From NCBI GenBank assembly GCA_029953675.1, contig JAMWBK010000006.1, forward strand, positions 1,116,001-1,180,000: a stretch of DNA of 64,000 nt, in the 5' to 3' direction. The position numbers were made by a program, and so were the translations under genes. Under the pieces are notes generated by a model that worked only from the letters and a program-made list of their open reading frames with translations, did not search any database and was not told the DNA's origin. Positions 12,040 through 57,689 of this stretch are shown here, piece after piece (within the stretch, counting starts at the first letter, position 1; each line of letters begins with the position of its first letter). The stretch comes from Rhodosorus marinus CCMP1338. Lineage: Eukaryota > Plantae > Rhodophyta.

Positions 12040-15000
12040 CTACACAAGCTCGCAGTTGTCGACATAGGCAGAGCTACCACCCCGTGTCTGGAAGAAGACT
12101 CCGTATGGATTGACACTGTTCGAGGTTGTGAATTCCAGGCTCACTTGCCTCCAACCACGGGATGCAAGTGACTTGCTCACAAGCACTCTTTTCCGCTGCC
12201 CATGCACACGCGAGTCGACACCGATTCTGAGCTCACCGGCCGTTGTTCGCACAAAGCATGTCAAGGTGTAGTTGCGATTCGCTCTCAGTACAATGACCTG
12301 AACTGCAAACCCTCCCCTGCTAGTCAAATCCATACTATAGCCATCCTTATCCTGAGATATATATTTCTCGAACTGCGCCCCGCCGAAAGTGCTCCAACCA
12401 CGCTCTCCATTGCTAAAGGATGGGTTGCGGAGGAACTGTCCGTCGCTGAGGGCGGTAGCAGGAGTCACGTCTGGCAAATTGGAGCTGGAGCGCTGCCTCT
12501 TCGGTCTTAAGCTATCCGTTCGTAGTGAGCAATAATCCGCGTACCCGGACACACCCGCCGCTGCCTTAATCAACAAATCGAATTCCCCGCTCACCTTAGG
12601 AGTAAACCTTAGGATTTTCTCGCCCCACGTCCTATTAAGCTCTTCATTAGGAGGATCATCGTTCCTGGCAACAACGGCTCCGTTTCTCGTGATCATGAGC
12701 AGAACAGTACTCATCTTCGTTACTGCGCACGCGAACCTGTACGTTCTGCCCTTTACCAGTTCAACAGTCTGAACAGCGGTGGACTTGTCGTTTTCTAGGT
12801 GCAATCCAATCTTTCCGCTGTACGCAACGTTTTCGAAGTTGGCTCCTGCGGAAAGATCCCAAGCCCTGCTCTCCTTCTCAAAGTCCCCATCAATCATACC
12901 GTCTCCGGAGCTACCACCGGGCTTCGGCGTCGGTGTTGGTTTGGGCGTCGGCCTGGGCGTCGGTTTCTTGGTTGGCTTGGGCGTCGGCTTGGGCGTCGGT
13001 TTCTTGGTCGGCTTGGGCGTCGGCTTGGGCGTCGGTTTCTTGGTCGGCTTGGGCGTCGGCTTGGGCGTCGGTTTCTTGGTCGGCTTGGGCGTCGGCTTGG
13101 GCGTCGGTTTCTTGGTCGGCTTGGGCGTCGGCTTGGGCGTCGGCTTCTTGGTTGGCTTGGGCGTCGGCTTCGGCGTTGGCTTCTTGGTTGGCTTGGGCGT
13201 TGGCTTCGGCGTTGGCTTCTTGGTTGGCTTGGGCGTCGGCTTAGGCGTTGGCTTCTTTGTCGGCTTGGGCGTCGGCTTCGGCTTGCCTGTGGCCTCGGGA
13301 GGATTGCCGGAACTGAAGAATGATTTCCCATCACTCGTCCACCCAGAGGGAGCCCTTGGTCGCGGTGTCACACGAGGTGCCCCAGAGGGCCTCGATGTCG
13401 AGGTCCTGTACAGCGAGCAATCGTCGATTGCTGCGCGACCATCAGCTGCGAGCAGTCTGAGAAAATAGTTGCCGTTCCTTGGGACGTCGAAGTCCATCTG
13501 CTTCTCCCCAAAGTACTTGTTTCCAGCGTAGTGAGCAAGAGCATAATTCTTCGCGAAGGGAACAGGCGTCCTTTCTCCAAATACCAAAAACCGCACCATA
13601 TCTCCAACGACATCGCACGTAAGCCTGTAAGTTTTTCCTCTCTCCAGCTTCACCGCTTGTTGTACAAAGCCGCCTTGACGAAGATAGGCCGCTCTGCCTT
13701 TCTTTGCGTACTTGCTCTGGTAATACGCGCCTCCAGCCATGAGCCAACTTCCCCTTGCTTCGAAGTCGCCGTGTCGCAGGATCTCTTTACCCACTGGGTA
13801 TTGCTCCTTATCCGGAAGTGGTTGAGGTCGATTCCCGCCAGAGAACAAGGTTGCGCAGAAGTCCGGCTTTTCCCCGGTCACACCATCCACGCCGCCCATG
13901 AAGCAGCAGGCCTGTCCAGAACACTGATCAACCTGCATTGTAACAGTGCTGATCGTGCCTCCCCCATAACCGTCAGTATATTTGACGCCAATGGTCGGGT
14001 TCCTTCCCAGCAGATCCAAATCTACAGCGACAATAAAGACTCCAAACCAGAGGAAATGGTAAGTTCTCGGTCCTCCAGCAACGTCCGGATTGTAGAAGAC
14101 TGGAACACCGTTCACAGTGATCTTCGGGAAGTCCCCCCTCTGCCATCCTCGGGAGTGCGCAATTCGGATGAATCCCATCCCTTTGCCCGTCGGAATGTTG
14201 CGGAATCTAAAGAACTGCTCCTCGTCCTCAATCGGTACGAGCACTTTGCTGTTGTAGTGCCTGGATCGCTTGATCACGCTGCCGCTTGTCTGAGAGACTT
14301 TCTTCGCGAACGTCAGCTCGTAGGTAACCATCTCATCATGTCTGATGCTAATAGTATCCGGGGCTCTGGCAGGACCTCTGCTGGAAGCCTGTGAAACGAC
14401 CCTGTCTTCGTACATGATCTTGCCTCCTCTGTCCAGAGAGAGATTCTTATCTGCTCTTGTTAGAGCCCTGTCCGCGAGCCAAAGTCTCTTCCTCTTCACG
14501 GTTTGCAACGGAGCCGGTAGGTTCTTCGGAAACTTGAAGTCGACCTCGACAGTCGCATTCCTGAGGTTCTGCATGATCATCCAAGCCTTGTCTCCATCCA
14601 GGAACGCGTGGACATAAACGTCCGGGTGCGACGAGTACGAATATGCAAAATCTCCATCAACTCCCTGGAGCATTTGGAAATACCTAACGAGGTTCGTCAT
14701 CTTGTATTGCCCGTTATTCTGTTTCACAACCATGGACCATGGATACTTGGGTTCTCCCTTTCTGGTCCTCTGTGCTGGGTCGACCGTGATGAATGAGACA
14801 GCTTTCAGCATCTTATCAGGGATCCTCAAAAGACCATGCAACACCTTCATCGCTTCAGCCATAATCTTGAAGTCCTGACCGTCAGTCGCCGGTTGCGCCT
14901 TCTCCTTCTCCTTGTCGTACCATCCGATTGTGTACGATCCCATTTCAGATACAACGTAGTCATAGACCTTTCCTCTCTCCTTCTTCGTATAGCTCTCGAT

Positions 15001-15840
15001 GAGATCGATATTTCCCTCAGCGACAGCGCCTCCTACATCGTATAAATGCTCGGAAATGAAGTCCTGGCACCCATCCATATTGTCCATCCAGATCTGCATC
15101 CTTCTCCGGAAGTAGTCGAACTTCTGGAAATACGGTCGGGTAAAAGCCGCTGCAGGTCCGCCAACCTTTATTTCTGGGTGCATTTTCTTCACAGCCTTGC
15201 AAATTTTGTTGCATTTGGAGGCAAACCTTCTAATCATCTCCTTCTCCGATTGGTTTCCAGGGCGGATCCTGCTCCATTTCACCATCGGCTCGTTCATACA
15301 CTCGTAAATGCGTGGTCTGAAGAAGCCCCTGCTGTCATCGAAGAAGTACTTGAAGTACTGACCAAGGTACCAATAGTCCTGCGCCCTCTCCCGATTGATA
15401 AAAGCCTTCATCTTGTTCGCGGGATCAGATAGAATTCGATCCGCAGGAATGTATTTCCTTGTGACTTCAGTGCATCCGGTGCAGAAGCGTGGCCTCATGA
15501 TCTTCTCGCCCTCGGCCTTCATTGCGCTGACAGAGATCTTGTCCTTCTTCCATAGGTCAGAGCCAGAGAATGGCCCATCACCAGTAGTTCTCGCGAACGT
15601 GATGCCTAGAGTGTCCGCAAAGTATCGCATGGTCTTCTTGGGTAACTTCCCCTCGCTGTACCTCCCCTGAGCGACAACGAAGTCATCTCTCTTGAACTTC
15701 TTGACTCCCCCTGTGTTGAGGTTCGTTTGGAAGTCACATGTTATAGTCGTCCTCTTGGTACGCAATCCATCCACCTCGTTGAGAGTGATCGTCAACAGTG
15801 ACAGAATCACCATCAACGCAGAAACCTTGTACATCGCCAT
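12040..15840 (-). CDS. Secreted GH86 beta-porphyranase/beta-agarase-like glycoside hydrolase with three CBM4/9-like modules and a Pro-Thr-Lys linker (1266 aa, intronless)
   Basis: Signal peptide [28 protein letters not shown] clan acid/base motif [10 protein letters not shown], then GGPAAA, HLYD and the nucleophile motif VVSEMG. The beta-sandwich ending [13 protein letters not shown]...[16 protein letters not shown] resembles the beta-porphyranase A C-terminal domain. Three repeats start with a GDFE/NPSF-type motif ([38 protein letters not shown]). Confidence 0.9.
12921..13285 (-). repeat. 36-bp coding tandem repeat, ~9.5 units, encoding ([12 protein letters not shown])n
   Basis: The plus strand reads (cggcttgggcgtcggcttgggcgtcggtttcttggt)n. 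There are nine KK-containing units; the central ones are identical and the flanking ones carry mostly synonymous changes. Confidence 0.95.
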
Positions 15841-18800
15841 ATCTAATCTCCCGTTATTAGCAAGAGTAAGTTATTTTCCTCAAAATCTAGCCCCCCGAGA
15901 GCGTTCCAGAAAGTACACTACTGTCTCTCCTATTGTACAAGCCCAGCCATTTCTCCGTCCGTCCTGTCTACCAACCTCGCACTGTCCGATTTTCTGATTC
16001 TCGTTTCGAAGAACCTTCCCTGACTGGACGAACGTGCGGCACAACTTACGCACATCTTCTACTCTGCCTGCCGAGCCGACCTTCTGCGAACTTTACCAGG
16101 GTGACTAATCCTTCTTATATGAAATCCAACTCACAACTGTCTAAGCTAAAACTCTGGTGCAAATTCTCTTGTCAAGAGCTTGTGACCTTCCACAAGGAGC
16201 TAGTCCAGAAAAATCCAGAAAATAATACAGAAAACGAGCGAGGCACCGCAGATTTTTTTGCTTGAACGAGGTCGAGTTTTGTTTTTGCTTTTTTTTCGCT
16301 TGAGAGGGACAAGACAAAATTAAAAATTCTGTCGGTGATCGACACAAAGAGCAAATGTGCCGGGCTTTCGATACCATCCAAAAGCTTACCAATCCACAGA
16401 AAAGGGGGGAGAGAGCGGGAACCAAAAAAAGGAAGAAATTGATGAAACCCGAAGCGCAACATGATCCGGAAAGGGGCCTCGCGACGGCTTTCATAATTTC
16501 CCCGGGGCCTCCGTTGAAAACAAATTATAGCATGAATTATTGTTCCGGCGAAAAGAACAAGCCAGGAAAAAGAGAGAGGAAGTGCGACACCCAAGGTTGA
16601 ACAGACACCCACCAAACAAAAAACCCCTTCCCCTCCCTCTTCTTCCCACTATTCCGTAATTATTTCTTCCTCAATTCATACAAAAGACGAAAAATTGTCC
16701 TCAAGTCCCGTCCCCATGATGCTCGAAACAGAAATTCGAACACACATCCATTCCCACCCACCCAAATGCTTCTGTACCGATGAAATCTAAGGGAAATCAA
16801 ATGCCAATCGCGTCCCATCCATTTGCTACTCAAGTCCCATTTTTCATAAACAATTTCTTATCTCAATTCATGTTTTTCAATTTTTGCTTAGGAGCTTGAG
16901 TTTGCCACCCCAAGAATGTTGACCCTCTCCTTTCCTTAATTATACTACAAATATTACTTGCTTCATTCCCATCGGATATGATTGGTCGTTTGCAAAAGCC
17001 GTTCAGTATTGGAACCAAGTTGAGAATTGAAGTCCTTATATATAATCTTTATAATGGTAAGAAAATACACTGTTCGGACCACCGAGCCACTTTTGTCTAT
17101 CCCCAAGATTTACAAGGTTTCGAGGCAGGGGGGTATCGACCCGTGATTTGCTTCCGAGCTTTGGGAAGGCGAATTTCAAAATAGGGGTTGGATATATTGC
17201 CCCGCTGATCTAGCTTTCTTCGATTTTTTGGTGAAATATGGGATTTCTAGGTTTACAGGTCACCCATGGACATTGTCCTTGTAGGGGGGGGAGAGGGTTG
17301 AGCACCAACGGAAATTGGATGGACCCATGCCAGGGTGAAATTCAAGTTCGGAAATTCGTTTTCGGGATGAAGCACTGTTCCGTGTTTGAGACATTTTAGA
17401 TCCTTGTAGAGAATTTATTTCGATAATACAGAATATATCTAGGAGGATTGCTCAAAACGGGGGAGCCGGGGCTAGAAGTTTTCTGGAATTTCTTCATTCC
17501 AAGAGTGACTCGTCTTTATTCTGAACAAGAATTTAAATCTAGCTCAAAATGGTCTGCTTTAAGGATTAATGTTGGAAGTTTTAGAACTTTCTCAAGCCTA
17601 AAACGGTGCACAAATATGTGAAATCTTACGTTCCATGTTCCCAAGGACCCTTTTTGAAACCTACACGCTCATGGAAGTATCCAACCGCAATCTTCAGCAA
17701 TGGACTCAGGAAACAGTGTATTGTGAAAGCAATATAAGCGATATATCATCTCTTATTCATTATTTCTGAAAGAAAAGCGTCTTCCGGCCTAGACCCGGAG
17801 GGGTCCTGGTATCTCCATGCAGTTGTGCCAACAATACCAGACACCTTGAATTTTTGAAGAACTCATGATCGCCGACGAGCATCAGGGCAACCCGAGCAAC
17901 TCTTTTACGCAAAAATAGTGTAATGTATTCCAATCTACTCCTATCTTTTGGTAATATTTACTATTTACATGGCTAAAACCGACCAATTTCCTTTGGAGTC
18001 TCTGTAAAGTTCAGAAAGGAACCTAAAATGGAGGAGCCTCCGAGATTGGGGCATGGGATGGGTAATGTGTGCAAACACAAGCATGGAAAAATTGATCATG
18101 CAAAAACGAAAAAGGGGGGAATGCGAGAAGGGTTGTTGTGGGTGCCATCTGCCATCTTTGGTACTTCAACAAGGATTATCTCTATATTCTGAAGCGTTGG
18201 GCGAATTTTGCTTGGAAGTGGTAATGCTTGACAAACCGGATCGAATAGGATTCCGTTTGCTGTTTTTGAAAGGTCGGAAACTGTACATCGTTCCTCGCAA
18301 TAGATACACATTCACTCCTCTCACATGTTTCTGCGGTCCGGTTGGACAATAAACTGCAAAGGTCAAGGTTCCGTGTTCGCCGCGGGTTTTTTCCATTCTA
18401 AGGACTATTTTAGACCGTTTTTGGTCTTAATCATCACAGACGTTGCCGATGTTGATTGGCTGATTCTTCAAACTAATGGATTAATATGAGTTATGAGCTG
18501 TACTCTCCTTGGAAATAGACCCAAAGTGAGCTAAAATGACTTCATTTTTGCCTTAGCTTCTTTTTTTGGGGTGGGACATGGAATCGGGTGTGCGGGGATT
18601 GAGTCGCCTGCCAAGTGTGTATATATAAACGGACCCGATTCAATTCCACAAGAGGATTAGAATTTTTCACTTTTAATCGATTCTGTCGCTTCATAAAGGA
18701 ATGGACACGGCGGTTCGACACAGTGGATAAAAATTATATGATTTTGAGGACTGTGGCTTGAAGGGTTTTTGACCATAGGAAGGGTAGGATTTTAAAAAAA

Positions 18801-21800
18801 GGGTGTGTGGGTGGACAAACTAATTAATTCACCTGGATCACGGTAGGAGTCTGAATACGTGGAGCTATCTCCGGGTCAAAGGGGCTCAGAGGAATTGCAC
18901 GGGAACGAGGGGGGACACATCTCTCCCGGTCCAAGCTTCGTGAACCTGTCTCTTTCCCACGAACCTTGTTTCTGTTGGAAACCTACCGAACAGGCATAGG
19001 CGAAGTTTGTTTCTCGATCCTTGAGTACTGGTGTCCTTATGACTGACCACTTTACAGTTCTGTTGCGAGTCGTTTTGCGTTGAGGACTCTCCGGCTCCAG
19101 CGGCCTTTTTCTCTGGCTCGACTGAGCGCATCCTGTCTTTAATCCGAGTCACGCTCTGTGGGGCCGTCCTTCGCCCGGGGAATATTTCGAATCGAGGTCA
19201 CGACGAACGCATTATGCCATGGACCTTTCTTCGTACTATCGATCGCATCATCCGAGCATGTTCATCGTGGATGGACTGAGTTTAGACGACCTCAGCGGTG
19301 TGCTCCGCCTGATTCGGATACCGGCTAGTGTAGGTAGATAGCTATTATAGCGCACAGCTGTAAAAGTAGGTCGAGGACCACTTCCACCAAGCATGCCTAC
19401 GTTGGAACCATATCCGTGTGGGGACAAGGGTATCGTCGATTCGTAGGCTTTGGTTGCCTATTGTTGGGAACTTGGCCATGTTCTTCTCGGTTTGTGTGTC
19501 TCTGTATTCCCCCGTTTGAACTCGAAAATGAGTGCTTGCCGGTATGGCAAGTTATAACCGGTGATGACCCAAAATGCCATTTTTTTCTTCCACCTATTCG
19601 AAGTACAAGTATCCATCCAGTCGTACCAACTTTATCCGTCCGTACTCACCGTGTCAATCAAAATCCATTTAACGTTAAACCGCAAACACTAACTTTGGTC
19701 ATTGGCAACTAACTTCCCAGTGCGCTCTTCCCGCATCTAGGGAGTGTATCAGGCGCTTCCACGCTCGATCCATTAGACTGGCTCCCCTGCTCGCTGGTCC
19801 CATGGCGAGGAACCGCTTGTGGCAGCAAGTTCCCCTTACCTCGCCGGCAAAGTCAAGAATTGAGCGTTTAAGACCCTTTTCAAATCAAAAAAAAGCTAAG
19901 GAAGTCCCCCAATCGGGATAAATAGGAAAGATAACACTCAAAACACCGAGCTTGGTGACAGAAGATTCTTCTGCTTCAAAAAAAAAGAGCCCGGATCGCT
20001 CAAGTCATAATTAAGGCGGTCCTACGGAGAACCAAGTTGGCGGTCGATCCCGTCGTTTTCTTCCAAACTAAACATATTAGGGGTTTCAAGTATGGACTCT
20101 TTTCTGGAAGGGGTAGGTCTTGGATCGACTCTCACCGTAGAGTTTGGGACGGATCTTCACCTTGTACACAGTTTTGGGAAGCGTCTCATAAAATTCTTGC
20201 GGGTTCTTGATACTCGGAAAACGTTTGTGAGATGGTTTGGAAGTGTGTCATCTGCGAGTCCCCAGGGGGGGGGCTTGAGGCAATTCTGTAAATGAATAGC
20301 ACCTCTTGGGTCCAAATAGGGAGACTTTTCATCCACGGGAACCCTTGGTTTTTTGCGTTTCACAACCTTTTTTTAGATCGGTTTATGCTTCAGAGGGGGG
20401 CAGGGGAGAGCCCGCCAATAGCTCTTTTTTGTCTCCCCATTGCATCGTGGTTTGTCTGCTTTTTGTTCCGTCCTTGGAGCATATAGACTAGCGTTTCCAA
20501 AGTTCAGTTCTCAGTTCATGCATATGCGAGTTTGTCTCTGGAAGTGGCGTTTGCCGCGCAATTGGAGAAATTTACCTGAAAGAAGAAGTCCAAATCGGGG
20601 AATGTGCAGTAGTTTTTGTCGTTCGTGTTCAACATCATATGGAAAAGATGGATGCCTGGGTTTTCCAAGCAGATCATATTCCGTTCTTCTCCCGTGCTTC
20701 CCCCCGGTGGCCAAGCTTTCAAGCAGAGTTTCCGCTTTGGGTTCATGTTGCTTGATTCTGTCCCACTAGTCAAGGGACGCGTTGAGAGGAAGGTGATACT
20801 CTTTACACATCGGCGTGTCTGCCATGACCCGTCCAGGCCATCCCTCCGACACAATCATCGCGCTTATGACGTCGCGAGTATCAGCAACGAACGATCCGTT
20901 TATGATCTCAGAGTATCTTCATGCCTTGGACGAGACACGGGTTTAGACCATCGAAGAGCATGGAGGAGAAATATCGCGGTACAAGCGATATTTCGCCCGC
21001 CGAAAGCTTTTGGGCCTGGCAGCTATGCACTTGCAGCACAGAGGGAGAGCTTGTTGTTGTTGGGGGGAGCTCGAAGCCGGATCAATCGGCAACTTTCACC
21101 ATCCGTGGGGAGGATGTTCAGCTGAGGTTCATCCTAAGCGGAAGCAGGGCTGCTGGTTTCCTTAAACGCAGTTACAACGGCCTCAAGTCGTTCACAGTAT
21201 CGGTCCATGCACGGCTAAACGACCGAATGAGCTTGACCACCTCAACCCGACCGGATTTTTCTTGACTGAACCATAGTCAATATAGATTGAATAACATAAA
21301 CCCAATCTCAAATCTAGACCCTGTGTCTCAAGCTAATTATAAAAAACAAAGGGAAAAATTGGTGCTCAATTTCAGCTAACTTACGTTAACTAAAATTGAA
21401 CAACATTTTTGTTTACGCAACAACTCAAAACATAGAAATTCGTCCTTTTCATTTGTCCTACAAAATAATCATGGCATTCTAGGGAAGCCACTTGCCACGC
21501 CGGACCATCTACAACAGTTTCATAATTTAGAAAGGAAATATAATGAATCCTGTTTACTTTTCAGATACTATTCCATAATAACAGGTACAATAACTTAAAT
21601 ATATCTAACTCTGTCAATTCAATCATTTTATAAGAAAGCTTCAGTTAGAATCCCTATATTTAGACCGCGCAAAACCGTGCTTCCCTATTCTTGAAATGAA
21701 CTTACGAATCTGGAATTTGCTGACACTGTCCTAGTGAATGGCATCGTTTTCGATGTATTTCTTCAGCAATATTGTTAGGAACAAGTGTTTTTTTATATCC

Positions 21801-22518
21801 CCTCTGAGTGGGCTGAGGTGGGAATTGAAATGGTTCAGCAATGGTTTGTACAATCGACGACAGCGACTTTCTGAAGTACCAGACTGGTAATTGTGGTGTT
21901 TCTGACATGGTCGTTGCTGTGAATTAGCATCAACATCAATGGACTGATTGTTATGGAAGACTTTGGTTACGCATTTGTCCAAGTAGAACCGGGCTGGTTC
22001 TTCCCGCCAACACATATTTCCTGTCAGTTCTTCCTGCTGAATTGAACTATGTGCGTCCCTTGTGGACGATGGGCCTTGCTGAGTTGAACGCTGCAAGAAT
22101 TGAAGGGGTAGGAATCCTAAAGAAAAAAGAGGTAGATGCTACGGAACTAAGCAAAACCAGTTGCAAATGAGGCTGGTTGATAGATCTAGCCTCCCAAACG
22201 CAGGGGCCAGTGGAGCATGAGGATGGTGCTGGACGTTCCTTCCCGGTGCTCCACGTTATAGCTCACTCACGTGCTGGTTTCTCATGCAGTTCTTGGAACC
22301 GACACAGAATTTGATGAATCGACTGGTTCTCTCCATTCCAGCACGCCTATGTCAAGTTAACTTGTTGACCCGCTCACGAGCTGGACGTCAAAGCACTAGA
22401 AGAGTAGGTGCTAAGCTTTCGAGGAGAAACGAGCAACGCGAAGGTGGAGTCGAGGGGTACGCTGCTTAGAGCGAAGAGTTTTGCTTGAGTTTATGGGCGC
22501 CGCGTGGATGTAAGAAAC

Positions 22519-25137
22519 ATGACTACCGTCCGACGGATTTTGATGTGTAGCCTGCTCTCTCTGCTCTGGTTTTACGTGGAAGCAGCGGTAGTAGATGTGG
22601 ACTTCAAGGCGGATCTATGCATGAACGACGACTGCTCTTTCGAGCGGGACAAGTTTGTGAACATGCACTACAACGTTTTCAACTCCGAGCTCGACGACGA
22701 GCAGCTTGCATTCTTGATGGATGAGCTAGATGTTGGAGTAGGTCGAAACCTCCAGGGTCCGCTCTCAACCACACCTGGTTTCTCTGCCAGACCTTCCTTC
22801 TCGGAGCTGAGGGACGCCGGGAGGCAGAAGATCGAGCGGCTGAAGCGGATGGAATCAAGAAGGATCTACGACACGAGATTTAAGATCGTAGGAGACAACT
22901 ACCGAGCTTTCGAGGAAGGCAGAAAGGATGTCAGGTCGTTTATTCGGCACGCCTCTTGGTTCTTTGAAACTCATTTTGATGATTCCCAGGGTGTCATGAT
23001 GCCGAGGTATTATGAAGTTGCCAATGAGGTTATGGTAAAGTGGAACATGTTTGGGAACAATGAGAGGGAGACTCTGCACGAGATCGCAGAGTTCATGGGG
23101 GGGGTGTGCTGCGGGATCAAGGAAACACTCGGGAAGCGGGTCATGTGCGGTGGCCCCGCAGCAGCATTTCCTCACTATCAGCGACGCGACTTCGAAATGT
23201 GGAAATTGCGTGTGCACGATTTTTACATGCGCGCAGGTCGCTGCATCGATTTCTGGTCGCAACACTTTTACGACCTAGACGGAGGCATCCTAGAGGCGAT
23301 CATGGATTCCGTCAACTCCTTCACGGTACACCATTACGGGAAGATCTATCCGCAGGTAGTTTCCGAGTTTGGCGCATTCTCAAAGGCCTGGTTCGACAAG
23401 GAAGGAAATGGTGCAGCTCCTCCAACCGCCTCCCGGGACTGGGCAATCATTCACAAAACAATAGGAATCATGATGCAGCTAATGAAGCGTCCAGACCAGA
23501 TCCTCAAGACAGTAGCATTCGTTACCGGGAAATCGAGCTGGACCAGTGGGGAGCACCCTTATCCATGGGCCATGCTTAAGCCGGCAAAGAACGGAAGCTA
23601 CCAATGGACACCGCTCCTGGACATCTTTAAGGCCTTCAAAGACGTCAAAGGAGAATACAGGAGGTCCCATACTGACGACTGCAACCTCGTCATCAACGCA
23701 ATTGCTGACGACACCCATGGCTACCTTCTGATCAAGAACTCCGTGAACCGCACTATCAACGTCAAGCTCAGGCACATAAACGGAGCTCCAAGATCAAAAA
23801 ACCTCTTGATGCGGAGGCTCTACCTCAATGAAGTCCCACTGAATCCATCAGATCGAGAACAGGAGCTTACTCGTTCTGGAACTCCCGTCTTCAAGACGAC
23901 GGTGGAGTCGCCAACCTTAGCAGCTATCTCCATGAAGCCAGAGGAGATGGTGGTTCTCATCTATGAGTTTGAGTCGCCGCCGAAGATCCAGAGGCGTGTC
24001 ACAGTAACTGAGCACTTCACGAGGCAAGCTGATCTGATGCCCTTCCGCGGCCGGGAAACGCTCCGATATCGCATAGCCAACGTCCCTAACGCCGAGGCAT
24101 CTGGCAGTGCTTGGTTGAAGCTTGGCATCTCCAGAAGAAACGGGCTGTCTTTCCAAGCAAACGTCGTCTTCAACGGCGAGAGCATTGCCTACGAAGCAAA
24201 GTCTGCTCCTTACTATGACGGAGAGTGGATGCCGTACTGGGCCATGGTCAAGGTGCCTATTCGTCGAGATCTGGTAGCGATTGAAAATCGTATAACGATC
24301 TCCTTTAACGATGATGAACCGGGATGGATATCTTCAGTGATCCTGGAGCTGGAGACCATTGAAGCCACCGATGGACCGGCGGAAGATGAGTCGAGTGAAC
24401 ATGTATCGTCGTCGGTGGGGACGAGAAATCTCGTGACCAACGGAGGATTTGAGCACGATCTGGCAAACTGGGAGCACGTCGGAAGGGTCTGGCTCGCGAA
24501 TGCTGACAGCAATGTTCGTTCCGGCGGATCTGCTGTTGCCTTGAGGGAACATGCTCGAATCGAGCAGCAATTCAATGTTAAGCCCGGGAAATCATACATT
24601 GCAACAGTCATGGGAAAGGCAGCTGAGGACGGAGCAAGGCTCGAGGTTGAACTTCAACTTCGGGGGGCGGCGGTTCGAAGGAGAGCGATTGAGAGCACCG
24701 TCTTCAGCGCCTCTAGGACTGTCTTTCCAGTGAAGGTCAACTCGACAACAGGAACAATCGTTCTCCGTGTACCCCAAGACGGCGTTGGGGGTTACTTCGA
24801 CGCCGTTAGAGTAGAGGAAGTCCTACCGATAGACACCCTAGAGCTAAGCTCCCCCGTGCCAACCAGTCTCTCACCTAGAGGCACGATCTCCGTAACCATC
24901 GACTACCACGTCAGGGCAACCCTTGACGTTGTTGTGTTCATCAGACGCGGTTCAAATTACATCGCTGGAGTCAGACGAACGGTGAACGCAGGGGCTTCAA
25001 CCATCACGCTCCCCATCAACCTGGGAAGAGTTACACTACGTCGAGGCATGTACGATCTAGTTGCTTGCCTCAGACAAGCTGGCGGAAACTATACATCTAA
25101 CGTCTTCAGACTTCAAGAGACTCTACCAGTGGTCTAA
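22519..25137 (+). CDS. Second secreted GH86 beta-porphyranase/agarase-like enzyme with one CBM4/9-like module and a C-terminal Ig-like beta-sandwich (872 aa from the ATG, intronless)
   Basis: First in-frame ATG at 22519 (the ORF track starts at a GTG at 22504). Signal peptide MTTVRRILMCSLLSLLWFYVEA. Catalytic motifs YYEVANEVMVK, GGPAAAFP, HFYD and VVSEFG. MKRPDQILKTVAF aligns with [13 protein letters not shown] of the first copy. CBM start NLVTNGGFEHDLANW. Confidence 0.9.
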   Translation: MTTVRRILMCSLLSLLWFYVEAAVVDVDFKADLCMNDDCSFERDKFVNMHYNVFNSELDDEQLAFLMDELDVGVGRNLQGPLSTTPGFSARPSFSELRDAGRQKIERLKRMESRRIYDTRFKIVGDNYRAFEEGRKDVRSFIRHASWFFETHFDDSQGVMMPRYYEVANEVMVKWNMFGNNERETLHEIAEFMGGVCCGIKETLGKRVMCGGPAAAFPHYQRRDFEMWKLRVHDFYMRAGRCIDFWSQHFYDLDGGILEAIMDSVNSFTVHHYGKIYPQVVSEFGAFSKAWFDKEGNGAAPPTASRDWAIIHKTIGIMMQLMKRPDQILKTVAFVTGKSSWTSGEHPYPWAMLKPAKNGSYQWTPLLDIFKAFKDVKGEYRRSHTDDCNLVINAIADDTHGYLLIKNSVNRTINVKLRHINGAPRSKNLLMRRLYLNEVPLNPSDREQELTRSGTPVFKTTVESPTLAAISMKPEEMVVLIYEFESPPKIQRRVTVTEHFTRQADLMPFRGRETLRYRIANVPNAEASGSAWLKLGISRRNGLSFQANVVFNGESIAYEAKSAPYYDGEWMPYWAMVKVPIRRDLVAIENRITISFNDDEPGWISSVILELETIEATDGPAEDESSEHVSSSVGTRNLVTNGGFEHDLANWEHVGRVWLANADSNVRSGGSAVALREHARIEQQFNVKPGKSYIATVMGKAAEDGARLEVELQLRGAAVRRRAIESTVFSASRTVFPVKVNSTTGTIVLRVPQDGVGGYFDAVRVEEVLPIDTLELSSPVPTSLSPRGTISVTIDYHVRATLDVVVFIRRGSNYIAGVRRTVNAGASTITLPINLGRVTLRRGMYDLVACLRQAGGNYTSNVFRLQETLPVV

Positions 25138-25899: not shown

Positions 25900-27910
25900 A
25901 TGGCTGGACAAGCCCACTCCAGGCGTGGAGAGAAAAAGTCACGGCTTTCTTTTCCGAAATTCGTACGTCAGTCTCTTCTGCTTCGTATAACCGGAGTCAT
26001 CTTGGCCCTACTGGTTGTTGGGTCGTGGTTTGGCAACGGCAATCGCGAGACCTGGCCGGCGGAGCTTGATAACCTTGAGAACGTCAAACTCAGGGTCAGT
26101 GAGGACGGCACGTATCCGACGGTTGCGCATCTCATTCAGGATATTGTTCCGGGCGAGAAAGGACTGTTAGGTACCCCATATCATTCCCGAAATGCTCCTT
26201 ACTCCGCAAAAAGGTGGCATACTGTTTCCTGAACAAGTTTTCCACCCCCGGCGGGCTTCACATGGGTATAGATGATGAGAACCAGATCATAACCGCGAAG
26301 AACATCGCGCATGGCCTCAAAATATGGGTAGCGCCGATCAACAACCAGACGCTTATGTGCCTCAAGAGTCCATCAGGGTGCGGCAACAACCACGCCGCGT
26401 GGGATAAACGCGTATACCTTTTCCTCCTGGAGTTGATGGCCGACGTGAAGCCTGAAGAAGCGGATTTCGTGTTCATTCCGAACTTTCATTTCTGTTTCCG
26501 CAACAATCGAGGGTAAAGACAGATACAGATCACAACCTCCTTAGTCCGATGATGACTTTGCAAGGAATCTAACGAGCGTGATGCCTTTGGTCATTCGATC
26601 CCTTTATATGAAGGTGCTACGGAACCATCGGAAGGAGACCGGCGGACGAAGCAGATTCACTGTATTTAATATACAAAGAAACTCTGGAGACTTTAGAACG
26701 CCTAGCGCCTGGAAGGGACTGGACGAATCGCTTTGTCGTTCCTATGAGTCATGAACGCGGGGGATGCGGAAAATTCGACGACAGTTACGAACACGGTTCA
26801 CGTGAGCGAAAAATCCGCGTTTTGAATGCCGTTTGATGGTCATTCTCAAGCCCGTTAATATCGTAACCCCTCCTGACGCTAATTTCGTCATTGTAGAACG
26901 TCACCCGGTGCTGAAGGACCAGATTGCGATTAGTACCTTCGGAAATGTCGATGGCAACTGCTATCTGCCACAACTGGACGTTGTGATTCCTCCATTTATG
27001 GACTACGAAGCAGTGAAATGGGCTGAAAAGCCTCCCGCCAGCGAGCATAGGGAGTACCTAGTAAGTTGTTGCCTCATTTCTTCCTAGTTCCGACTCGTTT
27101 TATCTCTCCATATTCTCGCCACCAGATTTTTTCTTGGTCGTCGTCGTCGATGCGGGATTCGTTCCGACAGGCTGTGCCTTGATTACTGCTGGTTCACTCA
27201 GCCTTCGGCCCAAGCTAGCCGGTTGACAGAAGCTGCTCTCCCTGCTGCTTATGAAGCACTTACGCTGGTTTGTGTCCTTTTACTTGTAGTTAATCAACTT
27301 GTCAACCCAGTCGAGTGGCCACGTCGACAAGGTAGTGAACCTCATGGACAGATTCGCTCAGCAAGGCTGCCCTGGACATCCGGATAAGTGTATCTTCAAG
27401 CCGATCGGAGACCTAAATTCGCAGGAGTACGTCGATTATCTACGTAAGAGTCGTTTCTGTCTGTTGGCAGGTGGACGTAACGGATTTAGTTACCGCATCT
27501 GGGCAGCACTATTCACTGGTATGCTATGTGAAGCAGCCGAACAAGACCTGTTCTGCATCTTGAGGACATTTGCGACGTGTGGAGTTGGTACTGACAGCTG
27601 AAAACATGTTTCTTCTCCGTCAGGTTGTATTCCTGTGCTTTTGATGGATGATGGTCAACTGCCTTTTCAAGATTTCTTGGACTATCGGAAGTTTGCAATT
27701 ACCCTGAACACCAGAGGAGTGTTTATCGACAACCTCGACCTCGAAGCACTCTTGACAAGCATCGACCGGATCGGCGCCAAAGCGCTTCAGGTCAACGGCG
27801 GGAGGGTCAGGCGGAGCTTTGACTATCGCGCCCCGTTCGCAAGAGCCATGGGACCCTACGGCCTCCTTCTGGAGACCCTGAAGAAAAGGAAGCAGCAGCT
27901 AGGTTTCTAA
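25900..27910 (+). CDS. GT47 exostosin-family glycosyltransferase, type II Golgi membrane protein, multi-exon
   Basis: Basic N-tail plus one TM segment (LLLRITGVILALLVVGSWF). GT47 motifs PEEADFVFIP, LDVVIPP and YVDYLRKSRFCLLAGG...SYRIWAALFTG/CIPVLLMDDGQLPFQDFLDY. TAA at 27908-27910. Confidence 0.88.
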
Positions 27911-34628: not shown

Positions 34629-34701
34629 GCTCGCTTGGCCCAATGGATAAGGCGTCTGCCTCCGGAGCAGAAGATTCCAGGTTCGAGTCCTGGGGTGAGC
34701 G
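34629..34701 (+). tRNA. trnR-CCG: tRNA-Arg (anticodon CCG), 73 nt, no intron
   Basis: GCTCGCT acceptor pairs with GGTGAGC. Anticodon arm TCTGC-CTCCGGA-GCAGA; T-loop GGTTCGAGTCC. Confidence 0.97.
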
Positions 34702-34718
34702 CGACAATAGTTTGAAAC

Positions 34719-35210: not shown

Positions 35211-38200
35211 TCATGCTCTCTTTGCGATAAGCGCAAACTCTTCTTCGTCCAAGTTGAAGCTCTCCTTATCGCCTGCTCGATCCCCGCTGTCCTCATCGAA
35301 AGCCACAACATGTCGAAGCTTCTCGTAGTTAACAATTGTGCCAAAGTACCATCGTTTCGTATCGGACTGCAGCTCCTTCCGTGGTAAAGAGATCTAAAAA
35401 GAATAACCACAAACAACAGATCAGATCAGATTGCAACAGCTGCGGCCGCTCAGACCCGCCCTACAACTTGTGCCCTACCTTAACACGTATTCCGATGAGC
35501 TTCTTCCCGGCTTTCTTCAGAGCAGAAGACATGGAAGTGCCACTCGGAGGTGACGGAGTAGCCTTTAAACTAGCCTCTGGCGCGGTCACCCCTTTCTTGT
35601 CATGCAAGATTCGCTTCTTCGGCGTTTTGCTCCCTTTGCCTTGGTAGCCGATATCATTCAATTTTATGGACACCGTGCGCTCCCTTCCAGAACGCCTCTT
35701 CGCACTGTCTGGCTCGCTCTGCGGAGTGCTAGTGTTTGTCGGAGAAGCTAGCGTGAACTCCTTCTGCGAGTGTTTTCGAAAACAGAAAAGCCCACATTAG
35801 AAGATCTATGCAAATAGCTCAGGCCTTGAGGACACCATCTCCTACCATTGAAGATGTCCTCGCCTCTGGTCCAAGCTCTAGAGTTGGCAGCCTTAATTCT
35901 GTGGTTCTCGGGGTTTCCTTGTCCTCCGACGCCGACTTCTTATCTTCCCTGGTTGGCGCCTTCTTCACATTCTTGGAATTCAACGCGAGCTCTACCTTGA
36001 CCACGACCTTGGACGGCGTGCTCTTCGCTTCCCTAGTAGGAGTCCTCCTCGTGCTCATGACAGGCGCGTGTGAATCCAGATTTTCCTTTTTTTTCGACGG
36101 TGTCTCCCTGGGTTCTTCAGACGCAGCAACCTTGGAATGGCTTGGCTTTGTGGACGAGGCTTTCGTTGGCCTCTGGGATGGTTTTTTCTTCGCTTCCATA
36201 TCAGGGCCTGCAAGCTTGTCATCGCTCGCATCCTTTGAAACCGCCTTCAGTGGCCCCGTAATTGTCTTCTTCCTCACATTCCTCTCACGCGTAGCATCGT
36301 TCGACACGTCCAGGTTTCTTTTGTGCGGGTTCCTTAACTCTCTGGATGGTGTAGTCTTCGGCTGCTTCTCATACTCAACACGCTCGGAGTTGCTTACATC
36401 CTTGCCGGGCGTGCTCCTCAACTCCCTCGTCGGCGCCCTCTTCACATCATTCTCAACAACCGCAGAATCGGAAGCCTTCAGATCCTTTCCTGCAACACCG
36501 CGATCCGACGTCCTCAAATCCCTGGAGCGGGCGTTCCGTAGTTCTCGCGTATCAGTCTTCTTCTCTTGATTGTCTTCGACGGTCGAGTCCGAGAGGTTCA
36601 TATCCTTCGCAAGAACATTCCGTCGTTCCCTCGTTAAGGTCTTTTCCAATTTCTTTTCAAAAGCTTTGATGTTCGACTTCTTCAGCTCCTTGGCGGGTTC
36701 CTGCTCTCGTTCGGTGGGCATGGTCGTGTTCGCGTCCTGTCGTACGACAACAGCCGAATGCCCAGGTTCCTGAGCGGTTCTCGCATTCTCTTCTTCGGTG
36801 AGCACTTTCGGTAGCTGAGTCGTTGGCGTGTCCTTCTCTGCAAGAGGCGGAAGATTTTTGGTCTGCGACCGACTCCTATGCCTGAGCTCCCTCGTCGGGG
36901 GGTCCTGCGACGGAGGAGCAGTACACCCTTTCGACTGCGTAGCTGTGGCGCTCTGGGTCCTGCTACCTCTGAGTTCGGCGTCAACCGCTAGGTTCTCAAC
37001 CTCTTCTTTGCTAGCTGATTTCGGCTGGTTGAGCTTTTCATTCCCTTTCGCAGCGTCATCAAGCTTGATTTCCTTCCCGTTCAGCTTCTCACCAACCGGC
37101 TCCGCCCTGTCCTCAGGTTTCGACTTGTTGCTCACTTTCTGGAGTTTTTCACTATTCTTGGAATTCAGTTCAACCGCGGGAGCTGCAGTCAGGGATTTCT
37201 CAACACTGGTAGTACTCCTCGGTCGCAGCAGTTTATCTAGATCAGATTCCCACTCGTCACCACCAAACTTGGAGCTCCTTCTCCTTTCTCGCGGGGGACG
37301 CTTAGAAGCAGCAGGCTTCGGGCAGACAGCTTCGATGTTCTTCACGTTCTTAACCTTCCTGGTGCCACCTGTGTCTGTTTTCTCTGGAACAGGTTTAGTG
37401 TTCCTTACTCCCGCAGCCTGGGTGTGAGGACGGACCAAATAAAAGCTCAGATGGTCTCGTTCGCGAACTATCAAATAACTCGTGATCGTTTACGCTAGCT
37501 CTGTGTGCCCTGTGCGGGCAGTCCATACCTTTGCAGGCGGTTCAGAATTCGGCGATTGCGGCTCTGCAACAAGTCGAGTATCATCTTTCTCCCACTTCTG
37601 CAATGACGCAATCCAGAGATCGACGATTCGAAAAGAAGTTAAGATTGGCGGAGCTTGACGTCGATTTACGTAAATTGAGCAAAACCTCACCTGCGTGGCA
37701 TTCTTGCGTTTTCCGGTTGAACTACCCGCCCTCTCGGCTGTGTTACCGGACTCCGATTCCTGCTGTCACCACGTTTCCTCAGGTCAGAGCGAGGCAGTTC
37801 TTATAAACCGACGAGTAAATCAGAAAGGGTGATTCGCGAGTTCACCTTCGAAGGGGCAGCCGCCTCAGGCTCAGAGGGCTGTTCCTGTTCTAGTGAACCC
37901 TCTGCCGGTTGTTCTGGTTGGATCCTCTTCGGCTTGCATTCTTCCGCAGCCTGCCATTGAGGTTTCTGATAGCGAGGCAAACGTCCATTGGGCACTTAGT
38001 TCTGTGAAAACGCAACACCCGAACAGCAAAGGCGCCTGCAAGGACTCTTTGGATACCTCTTCAAGCAACATCTCCTCCTTGGCCGAATTGCCCTTTTCTC
38101 TAGACCCGGAAACGGGGGTTTCCAACTGCTCGGGTTCAGCTTTCGCGGCAAGGTCTTGAACCTGTTTCGAATTCATGTTTCGTTCAGATGCAGCTGCTGG

Positions 38201-52299: not shown

Positions 52300-52383
52300 C
52301 TCATCTTAGCTCAGTTGGCAGAGCATGGGACTGTAGTTGTGGCAGATATCCTAGGGTCGCTGGTTCGATTCCGGCAGATGAGA
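52300..52383 (+). tRNA. trnY-GTA: tRNA-Tyr (anticodon GTA) with an 11-nt intron (52337-52347)
   Basis: Acceptor CTCATCT/AGATGAG (C1-G72, typical of eukaryotic Tyr). D-arm TAGCTCAGTTGGCAGAGC. Anticodon arm TGGGA-CTGTAG[TTGTGGCAGAT]A-TCCTA with the intron at the canonical 37/38 position. T-loop GGTTCGATTCC. Confidence 0.96.
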
Positions 52384-52821: not shown

Positions 52822-54596
52822 TTACGCATACTCTTTTTCGATTAGCTTCCATATAGTCTGGAGATGGATGTTCGTGGTCCCCTCGTAGATTTGACCAATT
52901 TTCGAGTCTCGGAAGTACTTTTCGACTGCGTAGTCAGTGGTGAACCCAACTCCCCCCATCCATTCAACGCACCTTTTTCATTTTAGAGTAGATACACGGC
53001 GAACATTGAGGTTCAGATGGGATGATTGCGCTCTCATCTAAGTCAACTGCACTGCATGGTGGGCAATTCTAGTTTATGCGCTCTTTGTCCTTTTGATGCC
53101 TGGCAATCGCTCAAGCAACACCCGACAAAGGCAGGCAGATGACAGTCCTTAAACTAGAATTGTCCACTGTGCAGCAGCTTTCCTTGCTTCACAAAAAAAA
53201 ATAATGGGAATCGGGTGAGCCTACTTTGAAGCAACCTTCTCCGAAGTCTTTGAGCTGATTAGTTTAGCGATCGCCGCCTCTTTCACAAAAGGAGCTCCAG
53301 AGTCCTTCAACCGCGCGGCGTTGTAGACAAGAACCTTGGCTGCTTCCAATTCCGCGCAGACTTCAGCGACTTGAAACTGGAGACCTTGAAACTCAGAGAT
53401 GGGCTTCCCGAACTGTTCTCCGTGAAGACATAGGGAATCAGAGGCTTGATCAGAAAAACTAAAAAAGCTGCTACAGAGAAGCTGGCTATCGCGCATTGAA
53501 AGAAACATGCCTGCTTCCGCTCCTTCAAGAAAGGCAGAGCGACATCAAGCGCTCCCTGGGCTAGGCCGATCATCTGGGCACCAATACCAATTCTTCCTTC
53601 GTTGAGAGCTTGAATGGCAATGCGATAACCCTCGCCGGGGCTACCAAGCACAGCATCCTTGGCGACTTTGACATCATCGAAACGAACTTCACAAGTAGAC
53701 GATGCTCGAATGCCGAGCTTGTCCTCTTTCTTCCCGACGTGTACGCCAGGCTGCTTAGCATCCAAAATGAACGCTGTTATGCCTTTGTGTCTAAGGATCA
53801 GAGAGGAGGCACCGTTCTCGGTTAGATGCCAAGTGTATTTGGAAGTGGCTAATCTTGCTGACGATTGGCGATCTTTTGAAGCTCTTCAACCTTAGTGACT
53901 CGTCCACGGTAGCAAAGAGGATGAATACATCAGCTTCAGCGGCGTTTGAGATCCACATCTTGCTCCCATTTAGGACGTAGTGGTCTCCCTGCTGTTTCGC
54001 AGTGGTCTTCAGGGCGAAAGCGTCGGATCCAGAGGATGCCTCACTGAGGCAGAAGGAGGATAAGGAGGTGGTCGCCATCTGAGAAAGCCATTTGGACTTT
54101 TGAGAATCAGTGCCCCATCTCTCAACCACCCGGTTGTTGAGGGTGTTGTGGATATCAACAACGAGAGACACAGAGGCGTCCACTTTGGAGAGCTCTTCGA
54201 CGACAATACAGGTTTGGGTGAAGCTCATTTCACCACCACCATATTTATCTTCTACCTCAACTCCCATAAACCCAGCCTCGAAGAGCTGCTTGAGCATACT
54301 TCCATCCATCTTTCCTTCCTTGTCCATTTTTGAAACCAACGGGGCCACTTCCTTTGCAGCGAATCGCTTGACCATGTCCTGACAGGAGATCCAGAGCTGA
54401 GAATTCTCACTGAATCATTAATAACGCCCATAGATAATCTGCTTACCCTGAGCATAACTTCATCATCGCTCCACTCAGTAGCAGCCGGTCGAACCGACTC
54501 CGACATCCACCTCCTACCGACTGCGGTCGACCATCGAGGTTTCAATGCGTAGATACCTGCGGACGTCCTTGATAATCGCGATACACAACTAATCAT
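52822..54596 (-). CDS. ACADSB: Mitochondrial short/branched-chain acyl-CoA dehydrogenase, multi-exon
   Basis: Arg/Ser-rich transit-like N-terminus. Motifs [70 protein letters not shown] and [38 protein letters not shown] at 52824-52822. Confidence 0.93.
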
Positions 54597-55211: not shown

Positions 55212-55733
55212 TCAGAATGTGCCCCGTCCCTCAAGCGCCTTTTGATATCGGCGATCGTCATCGTAAGAATTTGTCGCGACGGATCGCAGGGCCTCAATGT
55301 ATTCGTGTGGGAGTTGAACGTCAATTGCTCCTTGGATAATCACCCGCATGTACAATGCGGAGGGTACAAGTCCAGACTGAGGATTCAAGACCTTGTAGGT
55401 GTAGCAGTTGATCTGGTCTCCGGATGGCGTTTTAACGCCAATCTCTAAACGGTAGTAATGACCAATTGATACTCCCTCTTGCACGTCCAGCTTATCAAGC
55501 TGGTCAGTACGAATACTCCAAATTGCACCGTGAACGGTTCCCCTTTCGTGCACTCTAATATCCGCCGCCGCACCGCCCCATCGTTCGGTATGAAGCGTGA
55601 AGTCCAACTCGTACCCGTCCAAACTTCCACTCGATATTAACTTCGCACTGGGACAATTAATCTGCAGTCGATTCTTATTCAAGTTCGATCCAAACGAAAA
55701 ATACAGAAATCGATCCTCATCCGCAGAATTCAT
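55212..55733 (-). CDS. GGCT: Gamma-glutamylcyclotransferase (GGCT/C7orf24-like), cytosolic form, intronless
   Basis: FLYFSFGSNL, WGGAAADI, VHGAIW, catalytic LDVQEGV and PSALYMRVIIQGA...LPHEY align with human GGCT as I recall it. ATG at 55733 (the ORF track starts at an upstream TTG). Confidence 0.9.
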   Translation of the reverse strand: MNSADEDRFLYFSFGSNLNKNRLQINCPSAKLISSGSLDGYELDFTLHTERWGGAAADIRVHERGTVHGAIWSIRTDQLDKLDVQEGVSIGHYYRLEIGVKTPSGDQINCYTYKVLNPQSGLVPSALYMRVIIQGAIDVQLPHEYIEALRSVATNSYDDDRRYQKALEGRGTF

Positions 55734-57056: not shown

Positions 57057-57689
57057 ATGGGTAGGTGGAGTGTATCTATCCTTTCCGCGATTTTGGGGAT
57101 TTCGGCATTGACGTTCGTATGCGGGTTCTGGGGCTGGGATGATGGAAAAAGGGTGGTGAAGGTGATGAGTCAGCCTGAGAGGTTAGTCTATTTCGGCTAC
57201 GGATCAAACTTGAAGGGGACTAGGTTGCAGGTTAGTGCGCCATCTGCCAAGTTTGAAGGTATTGCGCGTTTGGACGGGTTTAAGTTAGCCTTCACCACTC
57301 CGTCTCGGAGGTGGGGTGGGGCGGCGGCGGACGTGCTTGAGGCACACGGTGGCATCGTTTACGGTGCAATGTGGTCGATCGCAAGGTCAGAGCTGCTGGC
57401 AGTGGATGATCAAGAGAGCGTTAATCAGGGACAGTACTTCCGCGATTTCCAATATGTAGATGAGCTCGATTCGGGGTTCCGAAGTACTGGCAGAAAAATC
57501 AAGGTCTTGCTCTACAGAGTAAGGGAACCACAGCCCACTCTCATACCCTCCAAAGTGTACCTTCGAGTTATCCTCGCCGGTGCGAAGGAAATCGGACTAC
57601 CACCGGACTACGTCCATACGATTTCACTTATTAAGACGACACCCTATGACAACGAAACGCTCTACGAGCTCTTCATGGGACGCGCATAG
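57057..57689 (+). CDS. GGCT: Gamma-glutamylcyclotransferase paralog with an N-terminal signal peptide/anchor, intronless
   Basis: Hydrophobic N-terminus MGRWSVSILSAILGISALTFVCG, then LVYFGYGSNL, WGGAAADV, VYGAMW, VDDQESV (catalytic Glu retained) and PSKVYLRVILAGAKEIGLPPDY. Confidence 0.9.
   Translation: MGRWSVSILSAILGISALTFVCGFWGWDDGKRVVKVMSQPERLVYFGYGSNLKGTRLQVSAPSAKFEGIARLDGFKLAFTTPSRRWGGAAADVLEAHGGIVYGAMWSIARSELLAVDDQESVNQGQYFRDFQYVDELDSGFRSTGRKIKVLLYRVREPQPTLIPSKVYLRVILAGAKEIGLPPDYVHTISLIKTTPYDNETLYELFMGRA

Follow-up and report, generated by a model that had tools for sequence, protein, structure and literature searches.

In the textbook account of GH86, enzymes that degrade seaweed were transferred from marine bacteria to bacteria of the human gut; how, then, does a gene of this family come to stand among the chromosomal genes of a red alga, and what might its product do there? 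The question is raised by a window (the whole stretch of DNA that was analysed, 64,000 nucleotides) of Rhodosorus marinus CCMP1338, corresponding to about 1,116,001-1,180,000 of the 2,472,615-bp contig JAMWBK010000006.1. On the minus strand, at 12040-15840 (positions are those of the window unless a contig is named), it contains an uninterrupted open reading frame (ORF) of 1266 codons running from ATG to stop, with the stop codon included in the coordinates. This is the longest of all ORFs in the window; the runner-up, of 877 amino acids (aa), lies at 22504-25137. Both encode GH86 proteins, referred to below as copy 1 and copy 2. Copy 1 appears, with somewhat better than even confidence, to be a functional nuclear gene of the red alga with a predicted enzymatic activity, and sequence comparison places it as one of at least seven old paralogs. 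The catalytic part of copy 1 is made up as follows.

12040..15840, minus strand: complete single-exon coding sequence of GH86 copy 1, 1266 aa plus stop (ORF; single 1266-aa product annotated in GCA_029953675.1).
15766..15840, minus strand: signal-peptide-like N-terminus, aa 1-25, the sole strongly hydrophobic segment in the protein.
14641..15765, minus strand: GH86 (beta/alpha)8 barrel, aa ~26-400 (phmmer, AlphaFold2 (AF2), Foldseek).
15289..15291, minus strand: codon of E184, predicted acid/base, in N183-E184-P185 at the end of strand beta-4 (family alignment, AF2).
14944..14946, minus strand: codon of E299, predicted nucleophile, in S298-E299-M300-G301 on strand beta-7 (family alignment, 5ta1/5ta0).
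13924..14640, minus strand: two GH86-type beta-sandwich (Ig-like) domains, aa 401-639 (Pfam PF18206 and PF18040; all-beta in AF2).

Membership of copy 1 in GH86 is established as far as sequence and fold allow. A phmmer search against all PDB chains matched GH86 structures at 1e-20 to 1e-22: 5ta1 (BuGH86; 6.5e-22), 4aw7 (BpGH86A; 1.7e-20), and 8h97 (Aga86A_Wa; 2.2e-20). The AF2 model of residues 1-650, built on a 63-sequence alignment, has a mean predicted local distance difference test score (pLDDT) of 91.2 and a predicted template-modelling score (pTM) of 0.91. When it was compared with the PDB by Foldseek, the best seven matches were all GH86, with template-modelling (TM) scores of 0.73-0.83; next came GH30, GH39, and GH44 at about 0.4. 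Beyond the barrel, Pfam recognizes Porphyrn_cat_1 (residues 407-463; 33.1 bits, cut-off 27) and BPA_C (residues 544-637; 40.8 bits, cut-off 26.2). NCBIfam models matched neither copy 1 nor copy 2, and no sorting domain of the type IX secretion system (T9SS) was found in copy 1 in a Pfam search at E<=1.

In the alignment of 63 algal and bacterial sequences R84, E184, Y267, D279, and E299 are invariant, and N183 and H265 nearly so: by sequence this is the pattern of clan GH-A. The model puts E184 after the strand 178-183 and E299 within the strand 294-301. The structures 5ta1 and 5ta0 show one aligned difference (E versus Q), which the phmmer alignment places opposite E299 of copy 1; 5TA0 is the E322Q nucleophile mutant of BuGH86 (PMC5849685), and E299 is the predicted nucleophile because it aligns with E322. 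The original prediction, drawn from the letters and a list of ORFs, had described a 3.8-kb intronless ORF encoding a GH86 enzyme in a eukaryotic nuclear genome, with a signal peptide, both GH-A glutamates (NEP and SEMG), a porphyranase-type beta-sandwich, and no obvious T9SS domain. Each of these holds, the beta-sandwich in the form of two domains, and the signal peptide as a eukaryote-style N-terminus that, on inspection, has one hydrophobic core and is the only segment in the protein resembling a transmembrane helix.

Downstream of the catalytic core, the second half of the protein consists of linkers and carbohydrate-binding modules (CBMs).

13816..13923, minus strand: Cys-rich linker, aa 640-675, with C640, C645, C646, and C662, between catalytic core and module 1.
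13399..13815, minus strand: CBM16-like module 1, aa 676-814 (family profile E 4e-41; AF2 pLDDT 91.5).
12934..13398, minus strand: Pro/Thr/Lys-rich linker between modules 1 and 2, containing a part encoded by a tandem repeat.
12511..12933, minus strand: CBM16-like module 2, aa 970-1110 (family profile E 1e-39; 28% identical to module 1).
12043..12468, minus strand: CBM16-like module 3, aa 1125-1266 (Pfam CBM_4_9; phmmer 8xmz 6e-5; family profile E 1.6e-39).

The three modules are mutually about 30% identical, and an iterated profile of the family's own module matches every one of them at about 1e-40. Pfam recognizes the third as CBM_4_9 (PF02018, residues 1137-1244; 35.2 bits, or 28.6 for the module alone, against a cut-off of 25.9) and gave no match to modules 1 and 2 in isolation. 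Among solved CBMs, a 16-sequence module profile found 8xmz (5e-12), the galactan-binding modules 2xom and 9fli of GH53 galactanases (1e-11 to 1e-12), and the CBM16 structure 2zex (7e-9). Module 1 is modelled by AF2 as an all-beta CBM sandwich (pLDDT 91.5); its best Foldseek match is again 8xmz (TM 0.76, root-mean-square deviation 2.8 Å), followed by CBM16 2zey (0.71), CBM22 (0.69), and CBM61 (0.63-0.67). From profile and model, the modules of copy 1 appear to be CBM16-like, their nearest solved relative being the porphyran-binding 8xmz, and they are predicted to bind glycans; CBM61 (2xom), CBM16 (2zex), and CBM22 all match them, and their CAZy family assignment is not settled. Module 1 is about 18% identical to 8xmz. 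Going by title and date in the reference list of PMC11678492, 8xmz probably corresponds to the CBM16 that Mei et al. described in 2024 (Int J Biol Macromol 265:131041). The module occurs 1-5 times in most proteins of the red-algal clade, and in only five other collected proteins, one of them from Marinoscillum.

The Cys-rich linker, with its four cysteines, is 97% conserved between strains, and its CxxxxCC motif recurs in paralogs. The linker between modules 1 and 2 is of the PT type, without Ser-Pro4 motifs; it repeats a 12-residue unit encoded by a 36-bp tandem repeat (9.5 copies, 12941-13282), and it is 40 residues shorter in the protein P0002 of another R. marinus strain, the repeat number thus varying between strains. 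The Cys-rich linker and the three modules had both been foreseen, the latter as CBM4/9-like, a label now sharpened to CBM16-like; the 'extensin-like linker' is this PT-type repeat, and the extensin label was loose. The 36-bp repeat could serve as a strain marker, and its DNA is also the source of long but spurious ORFs, in other reading frames as well as on the complementary strand.

With the bacterial GH86 enzymes of known structure (BuGH86, 5ta1/5ta0; BpGH86A, 4aw7; Aga86A_Wa, 8h97) copy 1 shares the barrel followed by two Ig-like sandwiches, the catalytic pair of glutamates, and the conserved clan GH-A residues, and CBMs often follow in the bacterial proteins too. In contrast, its identity is 18-20% in the structural alignments and at most 29% to any bacterial sequence. 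Its gene lies in a eukaryotic chromosome, and the protein starts with a putative eukaryote-style signal peptide, has neither a lipoprotein signal nor the T9SS tail borne by many bacterial homologs, carries the Cys-rich linker, the PT repeat, and three CBM16-like modules in tandem, and falls in a separate deep clade.

The surroundings of copy 1 are those of a nuclear gene. Eukaryotic genes in the window encode RPS4e, VPS35, E2F, an acyl-CoA dehydrogenase (ACAD), a GT47-like and a thioredoxin-like protein, and two AIG2-like proteins. Several neighbours are split by introns, so that VPS35, RPS4e, and ACAD were detected as ORF fragments only, and the annotated VPS35 gene spans 4.4 kb for 872 aa; the multi-intron setting described in the original prediction is real. 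The genome report (PMC10250338) gives a Nanopore assembly of 13 large contigs with 8,392 genes, 24,821 introns (on average about 3 per gene), and 98.6% RNA-seq mapping. GC content at third codon positions is 0.61-0.64 in the two GH86 genes, close to the 0.51-0.59 of neighbouring coding sequence. The ortholog P0002 (1226 aa), from the culture transcriptome MMETSP0011 of the other R. marinus strain, is 91% identical to copy 1 over its full length; although about 9% of the amino acids have diverged, more than 1,200 codons remain in an unbroken frame. Two metagenome-contig scans and an exact look-up returned no DNA of this ortholog, and conservation was compared per domain as amino acids: it amounts to 93% in the barrel, 87% in module 1, 78% in module 2, and 72% in module 3. 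At the protein level, such a pattern is that of purifying selection. Copy 1 is integrated in a chromosome, and transcripts exist, as the orthologs and paralogs recovered from transcriptomes attest.

Copy 1 has company in the same window.

22519..25137, plus strand: GH86 copy 2 (P0012, 872 aa), identical to the annotated protein P0012, with its ATG at 22519.
24403-24822, plus strand: the sole CBM16-like module of copy 2 (family module profile).

On the contig, copy 2 occupies 1,138,519-1,141,137. The two genes stand head-to-head about 6.7 kb apart and are only 25% identical, and copy 2 keeps both catalytic glutamates, in NEV (E170) and SEFG (E283). Precomputed annotation also gives copy 2 a weak match to the newer Pfam family PF27624 'Porph_assoc'. 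A paralog 55% identical to copy 1, NDN08_000651, is on the same contig. The paralog P0003 is found about 200 kb from the window among genes for XPG, Cpn10, HAD, and cyclin, and P0009 (NDN08_000131) on a different R. marinus contig of 1.1 Mb. Together, the R. marinus paralogs that are named as such or traced through their sample are P0003, P0004, P0005, P0007, P0154, P0009, P0012, and P0135. P0004 and P0135 are assigned to an R. marinus culture because their source, JGI sample 3300017118, also contains P0005, a protein named as R. marinus. The paralogs are 25-55% identical and lie on at least two contigs. Another stylonematophyte, Bangiopsis sp. CCMP1999, has one family member (P0010). The clade also includes P0006, P0011, P0014, and P0018 from the sequencing runs SRR22824290/282, on contigs of low coding density and similar composition; their codon usage is compatible with a single organism, though not decisive. 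Two side observations concern this family. P0009 (586 aa, no CBM) misses about 100 residues after the nucleophile motif compared with the 50%-identical P0004, and is either a gene model in which coding sequence was treated as an intron or a decaying copy. About 9 kb from P0003 (L011 21829-22517, JAMWBK010000006.1 near 1.33 Mb) lies a gene for a 1253-aa protein with GSDH, Big_5, and NPCBM domains, a bacterial-looking glycan-binding architecture and a possible further candidate for horizontal gene transfer (HGT).

What might the enzyme do? The N-terminal signal peptide would direct it into the secretory pathway, for presumed secretion. Its barrel carries the predicted retaining machinery of clan GH-A, with E184 as putative acid/base and E299 as putative nucleophile, and would act in endo fashion on a sulfated galactan resembling agar or porphyran, cleaving its beta-1,4-galactosidic bonds. 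Three tandem CBM16-like modules, tethered by the disulfide-capable Cys linker and by flexible linkers including the PT repeat, would hold the enzyme on the galactan. The most probable target is the alga's own cell-bound, galactose-rich matrix, which would be loosened for growth, division, or the release of daughter cells. Secretion, substrate, and physiological role are all inferred here, and provided that the enzyme is active we lean, by analogy and by a modest margin over even chances, towards such remodelling of the self-made matrix. We do so because of the analogy with the GH16-3 enzyme of Chondrus and because stylonematophyte polysaccharide is rich in galactose. CcGH16-3 of Chondrus crispus is an endogenous beta-porphyranase that is interpreted as working on matrix made by the alga itself, and its authors propose HGT into a red-algal ancestor, then duplications (PMC9771727). 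In stylonematophytes the polysaccharide is cell-bound only, with galactose making up 58-87% in three of the five species analysed (Bangiopsis 78%, Rhodaphanes 87%, Chroothece 58%); R. marinus was not among these species (PMC9031348). Remodelling of the host's own galactan had been predicted on condition that the host be a red alga; the host is one, and this role is the leading functional reading.

Several points pull the other way. The signal peptide was judged by inspection only. Agarase and porphyranase are told apart by residues of the -2 subsite (T82/M396 in BuGH86, F77/S326 in BpGH86A; PMC5849685); the N-terminal position of this subsite lies outside the phmmer alignment to GH86 structures, and the substrate is predicted only as agar- or porphyran-like. 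The literature found contains no matrix polysaccharide analysis of R. marinus itself, and it documents no agar- or porphyran-type linkage in Stylonematophyceae. The last point at the same time favours another target, namely the walls of other algae, whose agar or porphyran would be softened or digested for attachment or carbon scavenging. Many stylonematophytes are epiphytes on seaweeds. Porphyran, to which the nearest structural relative of the CBMs binds, is a polysaccharide of bangialean algae; those GH86 enzymes that have been characterised take agarose or porphyran as substrate; and the many paralogs with their variable arrays of 1-5 CBMs resemble bacterial degradative repertoires. R. marinus, however, is a phototrophic unicell grown in simple culture; the bound polysaccharide of several stylonematophytes is itself dominated by galactose; the sole characterised red-algal galactanase that can serve as a precedent, of GH16, is read as acting on endogenous matrix; and no downstream agarolytic genes were seen within the window, the rest of the genome not having been searched. 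An attack on other algae is therefore the less probable function, at roughly half the weight that we give to remodelling of the alga's own matrix. That remodelling can be taken a step further. Stylonematophyceae are an early-diverging, mostly microscopic class of red algae, and they may make an agar- or porphyran-like sulfated galactan that is remodelled by their own expanded set of GH86 and CBM16 proteins; we put this forward tentatively, as rather doubtful. Were it true, agarocolloid-type galactans, together with dedicated hydrolases of the algae themselves, would predate the Bangiophyceae and Florideophyceae and extend beyond them within the red algae, and GH86 would join GH16 as a second bacterial hydrolase family independently recruited to the biology of red-algal walls.

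As to origin, an exhaustive HMMER search of 1.84 billion cluster representatives found only 324 relatives. They all group in a single family, in which the members that carry a name are agarases or porphyranases. More than 300 clusters are bacterial, from Bacteroidota, Verrucomicrobiota, Kiritimatiellota, and Lentisphaerota, versus 16 clusters from one algal class on the red-algal side; the sources and identities given for this search are those of the best 150 of the 324 matches. The bacterial side includes Marinoscillum, Saccharicrinis, Lutibacter, Polaribacter, and Flavicella (Bacteroidota), Lentimonas (Verrucomicrobiota), Pontiella (Kiritimatiellota), and metagenome-assembled genomes of Lentisphaerota. 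The only named eukaryotic sources among the 150 are Rhodosorus and Bangiopsis, and the closest bacterial identity to copy 1 is about 29%. A profile search of a named 90%-cluster database with the clade alignment, run with a word prefilter, returned Bangiopsis and bacteria only, and a search with P0011 returned bacterial beta-agarases only and no further eukaryotes. Among these matches, the distribution is patchy in eukaryotes and broad in prokaryotes, where it covers at least four phyla. Trees were built with FastTree (146 sequences), with IQ-TREE (55 sequences; LG+C20+F+G4 with posterior mean site frequencies, PMSF), and, in a quick IQ-TREE run, with extra named bacteria. The 55-sequence tree separates 15 sequences of the red-algal side from 40 bacterial ones by a single split with support 100/100, and the same split is found in the FastTree tree and in the IQ-TREE tree with more bacteria. 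Copies 1 and 2 fall in different deep sub-lineages of the algal clade. In none of the trees were red-algal sequences found nested inside a bacterial subclade, and a donor lineage is not identifiable.

On these data a single ancient transfer from a bacterium to a red alga, followed by duplication in the stylonematophyte lineage, is most likely. The direction is suggested because the family is broad in bacteria versus narrow in eukaryotes, because the GH86 genes are intronless in an intron-rich genome, and because the GH86-CBM architecture is common to both sides. The original prediction had pictured instead a gene acquired from a bacterium that became domesticated as copy 1; that picture is not supported, since what was found is an old multigene family forming a deep clade of its own, with no identifiable donor. 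The prediction had also set broad, ancient, and already described eukaryotic GH86 clades against itself: the clade is indeed ancient, whereas it is neither broad (Stylonematophyceae only, among named sources) nor already described in the searchable literature. Some considerations do tell against the ancient transfer. The taxonomic picture is drawn from the best 150 matches; the four members from SRR22824290/282 are suggested to be eukaryotic by coding density and composition, their origin being inferred; all trees are unrooted, which makes the algal clade 'sister' and not 'nested'; and the direction is read from the taxonomic distribution and not from the tree.

The unrooted topology leaves some room for the reverse course, in which GH86 was ancestrally red-algal, originated along with the galactans of red algae, was lost in the other classes, and was later acquired by bacteria feeding on red algae. 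A single split sets the red-algal sequences apart, with none of them nested in a bacterial subclade, and the algal clade is internally about as deep (paths of up to about 3 substitutions per site) as the bacterial side. This course is nevertheless improbable. It has to face the more than 300 bacterial clusters in four phyla versus 16 in one algal class, and the fact that none of the 150 matches is named as coming from Bangiophyceae, Florideophyceae, Porphyridiophyceae, or Cyanidiophyceae, though proteomes of these classes are public. The genes are, moreover, intronless where the genome averages about 3 introns per gene, and the CBM16-like module is found in bacterial GH86 proteins too, for instance in Marinoscillum. 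Still less credible, and rejected, is the course implied by the original prediction, in which R. marinus received the gene from a marine bacterium by a recent HGT specific to its lineage: it would suit an intronless ORF with a bacterial-type domain architecture, but bacterial identity among these matches peaks at about 29%, the paralogs have diverged to 25-55% identity and are scattered across 200 kb and onto a second contig, Bangiopsis shares the family, composition is host-like, and the clade is monophyletic in the trees. Bacterial contamination or a chimeric assembly, for which nothing speaks beyond the bacterial affinity of the family and which the original prediction had named as a way in which it could fail, is for practical purposes rejected because of the chromosomal context and the independent culture transcriptomes: the gene lies within a long-read contig of 2.47 Mb, with intron-containing eukaryotic genes on either side, a further paralog of this contig likewise lies between eukaryotic genes, transcriptomes of other strains and of Bangiopsis contain orthologs and paralogs, and there is no T9SS or other bacterial export signal.

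The ancient transfer invites comparison with GH16 in red algae. In both cases a hydrolase family of bacterial type that acts on galactans is found in red algae, a single ancient HGT followed by duplications is proposed, and a role on the alga's own matrix is considered. Unlike the beta-jelly roll of GH16, GH86 has a TIM barrel, and whereas GH16 is reported from Florideophyceae and Bangiophyceae (PMC9771727), the GH86 clade is so far confined to Stylonematophyceae; the GH16 paper does not mention GH86. The searchable literature contains no paper pairing GH86 with Rhodosorus, Porphyridium, Rhodella, Stylonematophyceae, or Chondrus, and the GH86-focused papers found there all concern bacteria, eukaryotic GH86 being undescribed. 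Nor did targeted term searches reveal any discussion of the GH86 genes in the R. marinus genome paper, which is devoted to mitochondrial minicircles (PMC10250338). The proteins are already deposited, under the automatic name "Beta-porphyranase A C-terminal domain-containing protein". Copy 1 and its relatives are thus the first eukaryotic GH86 in the searchable literature, and, with the genes deposited and a precedent for the concept in GH16, the finding is notable rather than revolutionary. An intact, transcribed, multi-copy GH86 in a red alga means that this enzyme family can also belong to an organism that produces its class of substrate. It provides an experimental handle on the almost unstudied wall chemistry of stylonematophytes, and, beside GH16, a second case of HGT for how red algae gained wall-remodelling hydrolases. 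Eukaryotic GH86 and CBM16-like sequences with unusual linkers could also be used in the development of enzymes and probes.

Several minor features of the window remain to be listed. The ~6.7 kb between the divergent GH86 genes (16000-22500) has no annotated gene, and its ORFs of at least 120 aa are without Pfam match; GC content falls to 0.43 at 16-18 kb, and the stretch may hold repeats or regulatory sequence shared by the two genes. An intron-containing gene for 434 aa is annotated directly downstream of copy 2, at about 25900-27910 (plus strand), with a weak Exostosin/GT47 signal: two consecutive exon-like ORFs match positions 205-251 and 258-280 of the profile. This GT47-like gene may make wall polysaccharide, which would be compatible with a wall-related neighbourhood and proves nothing. 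At 35819-37474 (minus strand) lies a 551-aa low-complexity ORF rich in K, E, R, S, and T, with recurring '...TRELR...' motifs and no Pfam match; the AT skew of this stretch is the strongest in the window. A tRNA-Arg(CCG) is located at 34629-34702 (plus strand), and a tRNA-like call with an abnormal two-base anticodon at 52300-52383 (plus strand) may be an intron-containing tRNA or a false positive. Finally, two divergent genes of the AIG2-like gamma-glutamyl-cyclotransferase type are found at 55212-55769 (minus strand) and 57057-57689 (plus strand), adjoining the acyl-CoA dehydrogenase gene, which is split over the ORFs 53307-53765 and 53791-54375.

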